A stretch of 64,000 bases of DNA. Source: Dimorphilus gyrociliatus (lineage: Eukaryota > Animalia > Annelida). The first letter of the stretch is position 1. Every line of letters begins with the position of its first letter. The position numbers and the translations under genes were made by a program. Location: positions 992,001 through 1,056,000 of the forward strand of contig CAJFCJ010000001.1 of the NCBI GenBank assembly GCA_904063045.1, read 5' to 3'. Below the pieces are notes generated by a model. It saw only the letters and a list, made by a program, of their open reading frames with translations. It was not told the DNA's origin and made no database searches. Below, one piece after another: positions 41,922-49,000 of this stretch.

Positions 41922-43641
41922 ATGGCAGCCCCTCCACCACCTCCTCCTCCTGGACCTCCACCAACATTTTCACAAGCAAATACACAACCGCCAAGAATGA
42001 ATAGAGGTGAACAGGATCAACGGGGTGCTTTGATGAGCTCTATTAATAACTTTAGAGGAGGACTCAAGAAAACTAAGACAAATGATCGTAGTGCACCTCT
42101 GGTTGACAGCAATAAAGGTAATTTTTTTTAAAATACATGTGCTTGATTATTGACGATCATAGATATTTCAGAAAATAATATAAGGAAAAGTGCGAGCACT
42201 GGAAACATACGCGGTACTTAAATGTTGTTAGCAAAAAAAAACACACTCGCTATCTTTTAACACTCGCCTGATCTCTTATCACTGTCTCGTATTTTTTTTT
42301 AGCGCGAAAACCACCGGCGGAACCTCCGCCGGAACCTCCTCGTTCACCCTCAGTCCGGAAACCGAGGGCTCCACCGCCACCGGTGCCTTTTGACAGTTGC
42401 GGTAAAGGCATGAATCGTCGTGCTAAATGTTATTTTTTTCATAGAAGAGTTAGAAAGATAAGATAAAAAGTTTGCGATAAAAATTAGTAATGAATTTCGT
42501 TTTATCTTTTACTTAATAATGAAGGTTGACCTGTTTGCTGAAAAATGTTTGTATAGTCTAGATATTGCTAATGTCAAATAAGAACGCATGCGTTTTATCT
42601 AATTTTCCTTCGAGTCTAAATAATTATTTGTCACTAATTTTCATTTTCTACTATTAATCTCTTTTTTTTTACAGGAGGAGCTGGTCCAGCTCCGATGAGG
42701 ACTGGAGGACCTCCCTTTGGTGGAGGAGGTCCTATGAATCCAATGAGTGAACTGCAATCGAGAGTAAAGCAGCGACAACTTCGTTCGACAGGAAGCAGTG
42801 AGTAAACAAGACAATAATGTTTTCAAAATTTAGACTTTATTCCTCTTTTACAGATGCATCATTGACTTCAGCTTCAAGACCAATAGTTCCTCCAGCAGAG
42901 AGACCAAAATTTGCTCAACAACCACAGCAGCCGAGATTTGACATGCCATCTCGCAGTCGAGCACCACCGGCTCCAAATCCAATCAATAGGACAGCATCTA
43001 GTGGATTTACAAATGGTTTTGCGAAACAAGCTCCCGCTCCAATCCCTGTTTCAGTTCCGACTCCCCCCTCTGTTCAGGCTCCAACACCTCCCTCTGTTCA
43101 GGCTCCTCCCCCTCCCCCTCCATCTTCAAGCCATATGAGAGTTTCTCAGTCAGGCTCTCACGCTCCAGTTGGAGGATCTCGGTACAACCGTGCTTCAAAT
43201 TCAGCTCCGCCACCTCCTCCGCCTCCTCCCTCAAAATCAAGGAATGCTTTTCCTCAGAGACCTGGGCCACCTCCTCCACCTCCACCCAGTAGGTCGGCAC
43301 TTTCAAGATCGAACACAAATCCTCCAAGGGGTCCTCCTCCACCACCACCTCCTCTACCACATAGAGAAACAGCACCCCCTCCTCCTTCAACAGAGCCTCC
43401 ACCTCCTCCCCCTCCTTCGAATCGCCCAATGCCATCTAGTGTACCACCGCCTCCGCCTCCGCGTCAAGACACCAGAGTTATGTATGATACGTCTTTCGAG
43501 CGAAATTATAATTTCCCTGCTCCGAACACTTTCTGTGATCCACCACCGTTTAAGAGAGAAACTCGTCATTATCCGAGTAAATATAAACAAAACCCAGCTG
43601 CAAGGGTTAACCATCCTCCTCCACCAGTCAACTATCGGTGA
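41922..43641 (+). CDS. WIPF: WAS/WASL-interacting protein family member (WIP/verprolin)
   Basis: MAAPPPPPPPGPPP start, WH2 domain (RGALMSSI...LKKTKTNDRSAP), proline-rich body, and C-terminal WASP-binding segment FERNYNF...PPPF...YPSK. Exons are 41922-42117, 42172-42213, 42303-42401, 42675-42797 and 42854-43641. Confidence 0.92.
43057..43104 (+). repeat. Two-copy 24-nt coding tandem repeat (PTPPSVQA x2) in WIP
   Basis: CCGACTCCCCCCTCTGTTCAGGCT followed by CCAACACCTCCCTCTGTTCAGGCT. Confidence 0.85.
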
Positions 43642-43872
43642 AGATTTAATAAAGTTTTAAATGAAGTTACATTCCTATGCAAAACTATGATTCGCTTACG
43701 CTCAGTGTATAGACGAAATTTAAAAAAAATTGTATATTTAAAATATATTTTATTGCACGAAAGCTTTTTCGCCATTTTATTTGGCCAGTTCAATCTTTTT
43801 TATCATATTAAATAAACTTTTCTGTTTCGTCAATAAGTTTGTTGTCATGGTAGCAATTAGACGCCACTCGAT

Positions 43873-44826
43873 ATGAGTATAACAATAATAGCGACAGTTT
43901 TTAGCGCTTTAATTAGCTCAATTGTAGGCTTAAACCTTATTCCTCTTCATTCATCAGATGCCTATGATATTTTACGGGAAAAGACAATGGAGTTTGGGAT
44001 ACCGAGACCTAACATGACTGTAGAATGTGATAAATATGCCATCGGTGAAGAGATTTCAGACTTAGCAGTCAGCAAGTCACACAGTGTCTACGTTTTGAGC
44101 AATTCGAGAAATCAATCAGTATTATTTGGACAAGGAAGCTATGGAACGGTTATGGTTCTCGCTATTTGGAAGAAGACTAAGCTCCAATTTCAAGCATTTA
44201 AATATTTAAACCTGCCTATTCCCCATTTGCTAATTCGAGAAATCGATAATAATGTCTTTTTACAACGTTCTAAATATGTACCGAAATTTTTGGGTCTCTT
44301 AAGTATAGAGGATTTTCTAGTACCCGGATTTAGCCAAGAATTAGCTGCTTTTTATTCTAATTCTATTCGTGTCGTAACTTTGGATGACTTTGTGAGTTCA
44401 GAGATCGATTTTAACTGGATAGACCTCTGTCTTAGCCTCTCTTTAGCTCTATCAGATTTACACAGAGTACGACGTTATTTTCATGGGGATTTAAAACCGA
44501 ATAACGTTCTAGTGAGATTGGATGAATCTAAAAATATATCAATTGTATTGATTGATTTTGGTCAAGCAGGCCCAGTTGGAGAGATGAGTTACCTCCTTTT
44601 CAGTGGATCTTTTGAAGCAGGATGGTATGCTGCACCTGAATTAGCAAAAGGCTATTCGCTATCTGAGAAAACAGATATATTTTCACTGGGTTTTGTGTTT
44701 AGAGAAATAGCATCTTTAAAATCTGTCAAGTTTTTAGATCTTTTGGGTAGAGATTGTATGAATGATGATCCTGAGTTACGTCCAACACTAAATCAGATTA
44801 TTGATAAACTTACAAGCAATAAATGA
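43873..44826 (+). CDS. Intronless protein kinase with N-terminal signal/anchor peptide; non-RD (HGD) catalytic loop
   Basis: A single 317-aa ORF with GQGSYG, AFK, FHGDLKPNN, DFG, APE, TDIFSLG and RPT motifs, and a hydrophobic N-terminus MSITIIATVFSALISSIVG. Confidence 0.9.
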   Translation: MSITIIATVFSALISSIVGLNLIPLHSSDAYDILREKTMEFGIPRPNMTVECDKYAIGEEISDLAVSKSHSVYVLSNSRNQSVLFGQGSYGTVMVLAIWKKTKLQFQAFKYLNLPIPHLLIREIDNNVFLQRSKYVPKFLGLLSIEDFLVPGFSQELAAFYSNSIRVVTLDDFVSSEIDFNWIDLCLSLSLALSDLHRVRRYFHGDLKPNNVLVRLDESKNISIVLIDFGQAGPVGEMSYLLFSGSFEAGWYAAPELAKGYSLSEKTDIFSLGFVFREIASLKSVKFLDLLGRDCMNDDPELRPTLNQIIDKLTSNK

Positions 44827-44942
44827 ATTGTTTATTTCGACCAACTCTTGATAATATTGGTGAATCAGTCGTTTATTATTAAAAGCTCGTCGGCATCTCA
44901 TATAAAGAAAAAGTTATAGACTTGCGTGGCACTAGATCGTCC

Positions 44943-45687
44943 TTAATAAGTCGCACCATCAGGCGGCTGTGAACTTTTCTTATTTCGAGGGTTTCTCATG
45001 CTTTTTCTTATTTGATCGAGTAGCATATAAATAGAACAATTATAGTTCCAATTTATGAAATTAGAAGTGTTGACCTGTTGAAATTTATACAATAAGATTA
45101 AAATTATTCAGATTTTTGACTTTTTCATTTTACTTTTCCTTGGGAATCCACGCCTTCAAGATTGATTTTCGTTAGAAATCGAACTGCTGGTGCTTCTCGA
45201 GGATAATTCTCGCCAGCATGAATACGAAGCGAATACATCCTATTATCATACGTTGTCTGTAAATTCATGTCTATTGTTAGTATTGTGTTGTTAGTTAATA
45301 GGTAAACTACAAACTCCAGGAGGTCCTAATATCATAGCCTGCCAATGGCTCATTGTCATATCATCATTACGTTCCAAACCGAGCGAAATCGTGCCGTCAC
45401 CATAGCCTGACCGAGCTTTTTCCAGCTCCTCCAATACTCGAAAATTTCTTGGTACAACAACTGTTAAATACATTAAATATTATTTTGATTGGAAGCGTCA
45501 TGATTCGTGACTGGAAAATTCTGAGAAATTAATATGTGGGATTATAATGACTGATATTAAAAATACCAAAGTAACATGACAATTCTTATATTCTTTTGTA
45601 AATATTTCGTCCTACGAAACTCTAAAGTATTCATTCTTAAAAGTAATCGTCAAAATTACCAGTATCTTTTCCTCCGGACGCCGCCAT
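44943..45687 (-). CDS. UBE2V: Ubiquitin-conjugating enzyme E2 variant (UEV1/MMS2-like), 4 exons, divergent
   Basis: [15 protein letters not shown]...[10 protein letters not shown]...[17 protein letters not shown]...[16 protein letters not shown]...SQPPDGATY; no catalytic Cys. Confidence 0.92.
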
Positions 45688-46069
45688 GATTGCAACCAAA
45701 TGGAACTTTTTCGTATAAATAAAATATTTTATCTTAAAAAATTAGAAAAAAAGCAAAAAAATTCCAAACACTAATTCCTTTCATAAAATCATAATTTATA
45801 AAAATATCTTGATGATTATTACGTAAATTACATTTCGTTGGTAGCGCCATCTGTACAATCGTGCACGAATTCCAAGAGATTTAAGAAGCTTAGAAATAGA
45901 AAATCCGTAAGAAACAGTCATTATGGTGTCAAACAAGGACAATCTTTATTCAAACTAATAGAACAAGGTTATCAAACTAGAAAGGTATCTATGAATACTA
46001 GTTTTAAAAATATAGATTTCAAAACTCTGCTTTTTCGCAACATTTGGATCAAATCAAAGATCTGAAGGT

Positions 46070-49000
46070 ATGAATCTAACTGTATCTACTTTGACTAATG
46101 CCAAAACAACAAATGAAGAAGTTTCACATCTAAAAACTTTGAAAGAAACGATTAAAAATTCTGCAAAGGATGGATGTAGACTTCAAGATATTTTAGAAGA
46201 AGATATTAATTCTTTTGTTTTTTACTTGTTTGAACGACGATACGGTTGGGCTGAATCTGATTGTAAGAATGGTCGAAACAAGAGGGAAGAAGCTAAATAT
46301 AAGTCATTTATTAACGAATCTCTTGATTTTCTTATAAATTGGTTTGTAAAGGACAATTCAAAGTCACTTTCCGTACATGTTTTCTTCAACAGGCTTACCA
46401 ATCAATCTGTTTCACCAGTTATCCTAGAAGCCTTTCAATATGGAATTAAAGAAGGTGAAAAAGTTTAAATGTTTTTTATGTTTTTATTATATTTGTTAAG
46501 AAAAGTATGTTGTAAAAATAAAAAAACAGCCAGCCAAAAACCTTCCGTACGAAAACACACGTTCTCTAGAGTTATGGATTGGCTTAAATCTCATAGAACT
46601 GAAATTAATGAAGAAAACTTCACTTTAGTCGAAGTAATAAATATTTCACCAACAACTGTTACTTCATAAATTATATACTTTGATTTTTGTTATTCCTTTT
46701 TACCTATAGACTCTTATCACACTGGGATTAACAGATGTTTGGTCTGTTATCAGGAGTAGCGTTGCCTCTCGTCTAATGCATTTGGCTCACTATTTGTCAA
46801 TTAAGCTTATTGAACAATTAGTAAGTACTTTGGTAAAATTATGTTCGAATCTGGAAACAACATGGCAAACGAAAGAAGGTGCAGTTTTAGGAATAAATGC
46901 CATTCTAAGAAACTTTCAATGGGTTGGATTAATATCACCAAGTTCGGGAGCATCTACTTTGTCTTTTGATCCTGTTATGCATACGGAATATTTACTTAGG
47001 GTAAGTGTAAATATAACTTATTCAATAAACAATATTGAACAAACTTAAGAGTGAAAATTAATGTTCTAGATGGGTGACGAAGAAATGGAATGCATGCCCG
47101 ATTTTTTGAGAAATTGTGCATACGATACTCTCTTTCCTTTATTGGCTCATCAACAGTTAAGTGTCCGAGAGAATACGGTTAAAGCCATTTCTTCTTATCT
47201 TACAAGAACAGATTTTACGGTTCGTCTACTCGTAGACAGAAATTTGTCCATATTATATTAAAAATTCTCATTGACTACTTTTCAGGAGACTCTTGCTTGT
47301 TTTAAAAATGTTATTTGCCAATTGACTGCAAATATTCCAAGTGGAGTAAGTAACCATTCTGTTTGTTTAAATCATTGAACAGTTTTCTTTATGACCTTAT
47401 TTTTTTTATAGATTCATTATCATAATGCAATCAATGTGCCAAATTTTAAATTTATGGAGGCTCAACATGCCGAAGGCTTATTAGGAGTTTGTGAATTTTT
47501 AGTTAAAGTAGGTTAATTAATTAAATACTTAATTATTTTAATATGATGTTACATGACTTTAAAGCAAATCCCTCCGGCTCATCTCCTCCCGCATTGGCTT
47601 CGTTATACCAGCACATTTTGTCTATACCTTAAGCATCCTGCGTCAACTGTCAGACAAGCTACAAGCTCAATTTTTAAATTTTTAGTTGCAAAGGATAGCA
47701 ACAATCCGTTGTTTGGTAGATTGGTTTTAGACTCTTTATCTTCTCAATGGAATGAGGGAGATTGGCAATGGAGAGAAGGGTGTATGCTCTCCTACGAACT
47801 AGTGTTTCGCTTTTTAATAAAAAATCATCTTTTATACACTTTTGGCCTACAATCACCAGATGAACCTGAAGAAAAGTTTGTTTAAATTATGAATGAAAAC
47901 AGTTTAGCAGAGTTTGTAACGAAATTTATTTATTCATATATAGAAATGATAAAAAAGCATCTCAAAGCTATTCAGAGGAAAACTTAAAACTTGCTAAATC
48001 AGTTGAAATCCATAAGTCACAATCGGTATGCTAAATTTGTCTTATTATTTTATATTAGTTTTATTTGAATTTTGAAGAAAAAACTTAAAAGAAAGAGTTC
48101 ATTTTCTATGTACCTCATTTTAAGTTGTTCTAGATTCACTATTATTTTCGTGCTATCCACCCACTTCTTATAGTTTAATGCATGATTGTCGCTATCTGCA
48201 TGCAGAAAGATAGATCGTCATCACTCTCGTCGGATAATAATGAGAGAGAAAGAAGAAGTTCCTTTTCATCTCCTCAACATAAGAAAATTTCTGTTGAAAA
48301 CGTGAGTGTCTCCACCATATTCCTTTTTATTTTTAAAGATATTCTTTGGAAATTTTATTTAACCTATTTCTGTTTTGTTTATAGCTTATTATTCCTCTTT
48401 TTATTAAATTTTCAATACTTTTCTTTATTTTTTGTGTTCTTGTGATTTCTTGTAAATATAAAGAAATCTAAAGACGATGACGAAGATACTTTTAACGAGG
48501 AAGATGCCATTAGAATACGATATCAAAAGAAAGTTTCGCGCGGTCGAACATCAATATCGACCGCTAGTCCAGCGTGTTTAGAACTATCAATGAAATGTCA
48601 TGTAAGATATATTATTTAAAAAATGGCTTCCAGATCAAGAGAACAGATTAATATCACACATTAATTAGCTTTTTTGCTTTATCATGGATTTTTTATATTA
48701 GCAATTGATCTTAAAAACAAAGAGACCAAACAAAAAACCAAAAATATAAAAATTAATTATCATATTTCAGTTAAAGAAAAGAAAGGCTTGGGGCCAGGTT
48801 TGTGTATACACGGTTTTATCGTCAACTTCTGTCGTAAATGCATTTCTTTACTGACATAAATTGTATATTTTCAATCACTTGCTATTACTGTGTATACTTT
48901 GTGTCTGTTAAACACAAGTACTAGAAAAGGGAAAGGGAATAATACGCTTGCAGTTTGAATTGCAAATTTTCTATAAAATAAGCTTTCTTTCTGATTACGT

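Follow-up and report, generated by a model that had tools for sequence, protein, structure and literature searches.

To our knowledge, every animal secretory kinase described so far comes from one of a few atypical families, namely PKDCC/VLK, FAM69/DIPK (PIP49_C), FAM20/Four-jointed and POMK, in which a luminal kinase domain follows an N-terminal signal or anchor. In this article, we describe a gene in the genome of the annelid Dimorphilus gyrociliatus (positions 992,001 to 1,056,000 of contig CAJFCJ010000001.1, a stretch of 64,000 nucleotides that we refer to as the window) whose product, a protein kinase of 317 amino acids (aa), has the same predicted location. It differs from these families in type: they are atypical and cysteine-rich, whereas this kinase has a canonical core without the extra disulfide pattern. 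The apicomplexan ROPK, WNG and FIKK kinases provide a precedent of another kind, i.e., the eukaryotic protein kinase (ePK) fold redeployed behind a signal peptide, as we propose for the kinase in the window. They form an unrelated lineage with different structural changes, and in the searches made their likeness to the annelid protein was limited to the general kinase fold.

An initial annotation, made by reading the window alone, had described an intronless and apparently secreted or membrane-anchored kinase distinct from the known animal secretory families. The distinction is well founded: the kinase has no match of PIP49_C, FAM20, Four-jointed or POMK type in Pfam at E ≤ 1, and separate PIP49_C loci are found elsewhere in the host genome (contigs C7, C19, C5 and C28). 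Our best reading of the locus as a whole, to which we assign a probability of about 0.5, is that it would encode an active Ser/Thr-type kinase that works in the secretory pathway.

Gene structure, expression and conservation

The kinase is encoded by a single open reading frame (ORF), with four in-frame codons between the preceding stop and the ATG and a total open frame of 321 aa. Four public sequencing runs were aligned over positions 42000–46500 of the window. Three of them carry labels of uncertain source or DNA; we consider these three RNA-derived because their contigs contain GT..AG joints in the neighbouring genes. The joints measure 51–89 nt, with additional longer alternative joints of 273–557 nt. 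Joints are absent from the segment 43817–44826 in the RNA contigs of all four runs, and the gene is thus intronless amid spliced neighbours, with the single exon and the 317-aa product that had been claimed for it. The coordinates of this and other features are given in Table 1.

Table 1. Features of the kinase gene, its flanks and its paralogues (nucleotide positions refer to the window except where a contig is named)
Feature	Position	Strand	Basis or remark
Kinase coding sequence (CDS), 317 aa, stop codon included	43873–44826	+	ORF list; no splice joint in four RNA-derived runs; syntenic orthologue
Predicted signal peptide, aa 1–19; h-region ITIIATVFSALI, c-region SSIVG	43873–43929	+	Kyte-Doolittle scan; orthologue
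Linker, aa 20–65; conserved LNLIPLxSSDAYxIL motif, sequon N47 (44011–44019), Cys52	43930–44067	+	Alignment A1; low-confidence or disordered in structure model
Protein kinase domain, TK/TKL-like, aa 66–317	44068–44823	+	Pfam; model confidence (pLDDT) mostly 85–98; Foldseek; family profile
Glycine-rich loop GQGSYG, aa 86–91	44128–44145	+	G86 invariant, G88 nearly invariant in family alignment
beta3 lysine K110 (AFK)	44200–44202	+	Nearly invariant column, alignment A3
alphaC glutamate E123	44239–44241	+	Nearly invariant column, alignment A3
Catalytic loop HGDLKPNN, aa 204–211; non-RD, Ser/Thr type (DLKPxN)	44482–44505	+	D206, N211 invariant
DFG, aa 228–230	44554–44562	+	D228, G230 invariant
APE, aa 254–256	44632–44640	+	E256 invariant
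Family deletion site, ~28 residues	44716–44733	+	C-lobe distance; profile alignment; secondary structure of model
Upstream ORF MVAIRRHSI*	43847–43876	+	TGA overlaps kinase ATG as ATGA; inside RNA contig 43817–44499
Conserved non-coding upstream stretch; 3' untranslated region (UTR) of WH2/proline-rich gene and/or kinase promoter and 5' UTR	43700–43850		92–98% identity to orthologous locus
Conserved non-coding downstream stretch, common to kinase 3' end and 3' UTR of convergent UBE2V (UEV) gene	44827–45050		92–100% identity
Paralogue 1, 648-aa single ORF, long Ser/Lys-rich N-terminal region	contig 9, 1429267–1430070		Genome search
Paralogue 2, interrupted once just after Gly-loop	contig 10, 1444211–1444924		Genome search

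Expression of the kinase is low. Run X4 provides contigs of its own over the ORF (43817–44499 and 44504–44783) at a depth of 16–24, compared to ~300 and 540 for the two neighbouring genes and 1–4 for a silent intergenic segment (45473–45774); the kinase depth is thus ~5% of that of its neighbours.

A search among 5.8 billion clustered proteins yielded one close homologue, the orthologue P0001 of a second species (318 aa, 63% identity), which is likewise a single ORF. The order of genes is common to both species and consists of an attractin-like gene, a gene for a WH2/proline-rich protein, the kinase gene and a convergent UBE2V (UEV) gene. Synonymous sites of the two kinase genes are saturated (synonymous divergence dS about 1.7) and the ratio of nonsynonymous to synonymous divergence (dN/dS) is 0.16, while introns of the neighbouring UEV gene are 55–64% identical. 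The fact that a frame of 317 codons stays open across such divergence indicates selection on the kinase ORF, and we conclude that the locus is almost certainly a functional gene.

Catalytic core and the compact kinase family

The initial annotation listed a complete set of ePK motifs, which can be read directly in the protein (GQGSYG, AFK, HGDLKPNN, DFG and APE), and the Pfam Pkinase model (PF00069) matches it well above the cut-off (56.6 bits against 31.7, E 3.4e-15). The residues G86, G88 and G91 of the glycine-rich loop, K110, E123, D206, N211, D228, E256 and the arginine of subdomain XI (R303) are all present, and they are kept in the orthologue and in the family described below. The assignment of K110 relies on the A-x-K pattern, alignments A3 and A4 and the orthologue; alignment A2 placed the family lysine at Q107, three residues earlier. 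Judged from this set of residues, the kinase is likely to be catalytically active.

A structure model was generated with AlphaFold2 (AF2) from an alignment of 98 sequences; with the two orthologues alone, the predicted local distance difference test score (pLDDT) is only 31. The model has a mean pLDDT of 82 and a predicted template modelling score (pTM) of 0.80, and it contains a confident, bilobal kinase domain for which Foldseek reports FGFR2, LIMK1, MerTK and IRAK4 as the nearest solved folds. Placement among the tyrosine kinases (TK) or tyrosine kinase-like kinases (TKL) is favoured by the family profile and by Foldseek, whereas the search with the single sequence shows no preference and matches the solved kinases PknB, CDK2, JNK and BIK1 about equally weakly. 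The catalytic loop is of the form DLKPxN, which would point to TKL rather than TK. The kinase is probably a TKL-like enzyme of Ser/Thr type, in keeping with the earlier description as a canonical Ser/Thr or TKL kinase, and its catalytic core is complete and of canonical, probably TK/TKL-like type. The best structure and profile matches as a group (FGFR2, LIMK1, IRAK4, MerTK, LCK, BRAF and CTR1) have the same canonical fold and motifs; unlike the kinase in the window, with which they share 15–22% identity, they retain helix alphaG, mostly have the arginine-aspartate (RD) form of the catalytic loop and have cytoplasmic kinase domains.

The full bilobal fold of ePKs includes helix alphaG, and this helix is absent from the kinase. 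In the AF2 model, helix alphaF (aa 265–283) runs almost straight into the equivalent of helix alphaH (aa 286–295), and the next helix comprises residues 306–316. The distance from the glutamate of APE to the arginine of subdomain XI is 47 aa. This distance has a bimodal distribution among the 98 sequences: 64 sequences are short (mostly 46–49 aa, range 40–54) and 34 are normal (62–91 aa, mode 76). A profile of the short sequences finds JAK, EGFR, LCK, CTR1 and BRAF as its best matches among solved structures, and since the alignment with LCK jumps from residue 203 to residue 232, about 28 residues around alphaG are missing. The catalytic loop of the family has the form x[N/G/C]D[LIF][KH]xxN, with HGD in the kinase studied here. 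The tryptophan W182 of helix alphaE and the cysteine C295 of helix alphaH are nearly invariant, and C186, also in alphaE, fits the family consensus.

A HMMER search with the two orthologues in 1.84 billion representative sequences retrieved 8093 kinases, dozens of which align with the query from end to end; the best match other than the orthologue is the Lingula anatina protein P0003, which has three tandem kinase domains (E 2e-45). In a maximum-likelihood tree the short type stands apart from normal kinases, with 6 changes between the two types compared to 28 in shuffles and a support of 93 in the Shimodaira-Hasegawa-like approximate likelihood ratio test. We consider it very likely that the kinase belongs to this family with a short C-lobe. 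All members whose source is named are spiralian (Lingula, Lottia, Patella, Haliotis, Nucella, Biomphalaria, Potamilus and Solemya). The named members are annotated as hypothetical or carry the automatic name shkC ('dual specificity protein kinase shkC' in Biomphalaria and Lingula). A language-model search of the Atlas returned generic kinase clusters only; the one nearest by features and shape, a candidate relative, is cnidarian. Two further alphaG-less members were found in the host genome (77.9 Mb in 349 contigs searched), which answers the question of paralogue number posed by the initial annotation; both are without a signal.

The kinase is a fast-evolving, long-branch member of an uncharacterised TK/TKL-like family. 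With the spiralian short C-lobe kinases (for example, Lingula anatina XP_013401651 and XP_013387748, and Lottia XP_009048192) it shares the deletion of ~28 residues at alphaG, the non-RD loop, the WLxxC and CxxxxPxxRP helices and the TK/TKL-like core, and some of these relatives carry N-terminal signals. It differs from them in its long branch (21–28% identity) and in having HGD and DLKPNN where most have xND and DxKxDN. Its architecture is also different, i.e., a single domain behind a signal, whereas long N-terminal regions lacking a signal, or domains in tandem, are found in most of the family. The initial annotation had regarded the non-RD loop as typical of innate-immunity kinases; this argument falls away, as the loop is non-RD throughout the family, most members of which are signal-less, and it says nothing on immunity. 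A study of the oyster kinome refers to just a handful of 'unique' TKL and TK kinases and contains no account of the family (PMC4883820). We found no published description of an alphaG-less family in the literature searched, and a text search for secreted kinases gave only work on FAM20, VLK and FAM69.

N-terminus and compartment of the kinase domain

The signal was called by hand rules, namely a Kyte-Doolittle (KD) hydropathy scan, the n/h/c layout of signal peptides and the -3/-1 rule. The only segment with a 19-residue KD mean above 1.5 lies at the N-terminus (windows starting at aa 1–9, peak 2.19), where the hydrophobic stretch in full reaches aa 25 (nt 43947), and the scan detected no later membrane helix in the 317 aa. 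The protein begins with MS, followed by ITIIATVFSALI and SSIVG, with the predicted cleavage before LNL; the orthologue has MNMNLR, LLTFICFSI and SSLVG, again before LNL. Positions -1 and -3 relative to the cleavage site placed by the -3/-1 rule hold small or aliphatic residues in both. Identity between the orthologues is 21% over aa 1–14, where hydrophobicity alone is kept, and 85% over aa 15–34, as would be expected if the h-region is disposable and the mature N-terminus after it is conserved. Over codons 1–26 the proportion of nonsynonymous differences (pN) is 0.30, compared to 0.61 for synonymous differences (pS). The signal-peptide-like N-terminus that was noted initially is thus seen in both orthologues. 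Removal of the segment by splicing or by an internal start was regarded from the outset as a possible objection; no splice joint removes it, and the orthologue retains none of the internal methionines (M38 and M48 are replaced).

The flank downstream of the hydrophobic segment has no directly adjoining basic residue. Its first charges are Asp29 and Asp32, and its net charge is -1 in the window protein and +1 in the orthologue, where it is less positive than the N-terminal side, which includes Arg6. Given these flank charges, both orthologues favour an orientation with the N-terminus in and the C-terminus out, i.e., with a luminal kinase domain, under the charge-difference rule for segment orientation, which was reportedly put forward by Hartmann, Rapoport and Lodish in 1989. 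The N-terminal 19–25 residues would then act as a signal for the endoplasmic reticulum (ER), either as a cleaved signal peptide or as a type II anchor, and the linker of ~45 residues and the kinase domain would come to lie in the lumen of the secretory pathway. The linker is modelled with pLDDT below 50 over aa 41–62, and the N-terminal helix is modelled at low confidence. Lacking a KDEL-type signal or a later membrane segment, the kinase may reach the cell exterior, and it would phosphorylate luminal or secreted substrates. We regard a luminal or secreted kinase domain as moderately probable.

The earlier idea of a lineage-restricted family with secreted or membrane-anchored members gains support from signal-like N-termini in Lingula, Biomphalaria and other relatives, whose secretory designs are independent of the window gene. 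In the Lingula protein P0149, a signal and a stalk precede the kinase domain, which is in turn followed by a C-terminal membrane helix and a basic tail, and this order of elements would place its kinase outside the cytoplasm; the stalk contains 7 sequons where 0.7 are expected, a number reached in none of 3000 shuffles. A word-indexed protein search with P0149, like one with the family alignment, yielded little. Lingula P0003 (L015, 6001–13056) has a signal for which a separate first exon codes, followed by an acidic stalk and three kinase domains. Two kinase domains follow a signal in Biomphalaria P0182 and in its relative P0025, and P0030 (L030, L031) has a signal and one HGD-type kinase domain in a single exon. 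As a separate observation, a small ORF with the hydrophobic stretch LMALILLFIHII (L029, 626–784, + strand) lies ~250 nt upstream of the HGD-type P0007 and is a candidate for a separate signal exon as in Lingula.

A broader and tentative proposal is that spiralians, and possibly cnidarians, hold an undescribed family of TKL-like alphaG-less kinases with a canonical core that might have been recruited, on one or several occasions, to the secretory pathway or the cell surface, an independent origin of luminal or extracellular phosphorylation. The forms included in this proposal are a signal with a kinase domain (the window gene and P0030), a signal with tandem kinase domains (Lingula and gastropods) and a signal with a glycosylated stalk, a kinase domain and a membrane anchor (Lingula). 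If it were correct, animals would possess a source of extracellular or luminal phosphorylation independent of FAM20, Four-jointed, VLK, FAM69 and POMK, and structural and engineering studies would gain a naturally minimised kinase domain that lacks the docking helix alphaG. The gene is single-copy, 954 bp long and intronless, and its host is culturable and has a compact genome; consequently, a single construct would suffice to test secretion, glycosylation and activity. Should the secretory reading prove wrong, an alphaG-less non-RD family of many molluscs and brachiopods remains unclassified in the kinome literature searched.

Several observations weigh against an active kinase in the secretory pathway. 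The secretory call relies on hand rules, and the window protein has no charged residue ahead of the hydrophobic stretch. The sequons N47 (NMT), N80 (NQS, 44110–44118, just before the Gly-loop) and N221 (NIS), which the initial annotation took to fit a luminal location, do not help: shuffled sequences contain 2.0 ± 1.3 sequons and 34% of them reach 3. We rejected this chance-level count as luminal evidence; N47 and N80 recur in the orthologue, but a comparison of two species at 61% identity is not enough to demonstrate constraint. The cysteine pattern was likewise rejected as evidence of an oxidising compartment, C186 and C295 of the three conserved cysteines being family-wide. About 54 of the 61 family proteins scanned, including both host paralogues, are without a signal and presumably cytosolic. 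The signal-bearing relatives are unverified gene models, and an older Lingula model (P0152) adds 145 residues before the 'signal' of P0003. In the tree, the gene and its orthologue fall inside the short-type polytomy on a stem of 1.75 changes per site without a supported sister. As for expression, the RNA contigs are unstranded, low read-through from the highly expressed neighbours could look alike, and a coral metatranscriptome (run X6) covers both neighbours and leaves the kinase uncovered.

The main competitor of a luminal kinase, which we find unlikely though not negligible, is a membrane-anchored cytosolic kinase with the helix oriented N-out/C-in and the linker serving as a juxtamembrane segment, signalling from the cytosolic side of the ER, the Golgi or the plasma membrane and resembling a receptor kinase minus its ectodomain or a protein with an anchor of the cytochrome P450 type. 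Its arrangement of a helix, a linker of ~40 aa and a TK/TKL-like domain matches the layout of receptor kinases inside the cell. The hydrophobic stretch of 23 residues (KD 2.0–2.2) has the length of a membrane helix and might stay uncleaved as an anchor, it is preceded in the window protein by only two residues, both uncharged, which permits translocation of the N-terminus, and most of the family is presumably cytosolic. However, the Lys or Arg directly after the helix is absent, the first charges there being acidic, and the orthologue has its arginine on the N-terminal side; moreover, an ectodomain and a membrane helix ahead of the kinase domain were found in none of the family members, and one has its helix downstream. 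A soluble cytosolic kinase, in which the hydrophobic N-terminus has no targeting role or translation starts elsewhere, is improbable. The signal-less paralogues and relatives and the low confidence of the modelled N-terminal helix agree with it, but the hydrophobic N-terminus has been kept over saturated synonymous divergence with pN well below pS, none of the internal methionines is conserved, the stop codon of an upstream ORF overlaps the same ATG in both species, and no joint removes the segment.

Two further alternatives concern the gene itself. The initial annotation suggested retroposition or horizontal transfer as its origin, and a recent retrogene or horizontally acquired gene would account for an intronless gene amid spliced neighbours and for the very long branch. 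We consider this very improbable. The host genome contains no intron-bearing parent gene (the next best match in the genome has E 4e-9), no poly(A) remnant or A-run was found downstream of the ORF, and the gene occupies the same syntenic site in two species and thus predates a split with saturated divergence. Kinase domains encoded by one exon occur often in the family (the contig-9 paralogue, Lingula domains 2 and 3, and P0030), and the absence of introns is all that is left of the case for retroposition. Signs of horizontal transfer were not found either: the nearest named relatives are spiralian animals, and at 0.27 the G+C content at third codon positions (GC3) is the same as in the neighbouring gene. 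An untranslated ORF, covered solely by read-through transcription from the neighbours, is less probable still. It would be compatible with the shallow, unstranded contigs and with the metatranscriptome in which the kinase is uncovered, but it does not explain a frame that is open in two species, the low dN/dS or the retention of all catalytic residues.

Flanking sequences and neighbouring genes

The upstream ORF (uORF) that ends at the kinase start codon has a counterpart in the second species, MVAIRRQ* (L013, 9981–10004), which makes the same ATGA overlap despite an indel of 6 nt. The conserved overlap suggests control of a weakly expressed gene by termination and reinitiation, and the stop-start arrangement probably restrains expression of the kinase.

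The non-coding stretches on both sides of the gene are unusually similar between the two species: identity in the flanks is 92–100%, compared to 55–64% in introns and about 50–88% along the kinase CDS. On this comparison, the flanks are under strong constraint as UTR or promoter elements that belong to the WH2 gene, the kinase gene and UBE2V. RNA contigs of the upstream gene end at 43833–43836 and the kinase contig starts at 43817; on the other side, an ATTAAA is found at 44878 and RNA contig edges at 44783 and 44891. Three other explanations of the flanks and the gene start were considered and rejected. A hyper-divergent allele or balancing selection (flanks ~95% identical and ORF ~68%) is not supported, given that introns and neighbouring CDS are equally or more diverged and it is the flanks that are unusual. 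A hidden upstream exon could have used the AG located 13 nt before the ATG, yet no run contains such a joint. A spliced leader or operon, considered for the gap of 38 nt to the RNA end of the upstream gene, finds no support, as the contigs showed no loose ends. The paper on the Dimorphilus gyrociliatus genome, which includes cap analysis of gene expression (CAGE) data, reports neither operons nor trans-splicing (PMC7854359).

Some transcripts of the WH2/proline-rich gene skip cassette exons, the RNA contigs showing alternative joints over 42115–42674 (+ strand): 42115 is joined to 42170 or 42673, 42212 to 42302 or 42674, and 42400 to 42674. The transcripts of the neighbouring genes in the coral metatranscriptome are near-identical to the window, which indicates that the coral sample contained this animal or a close strain of it.

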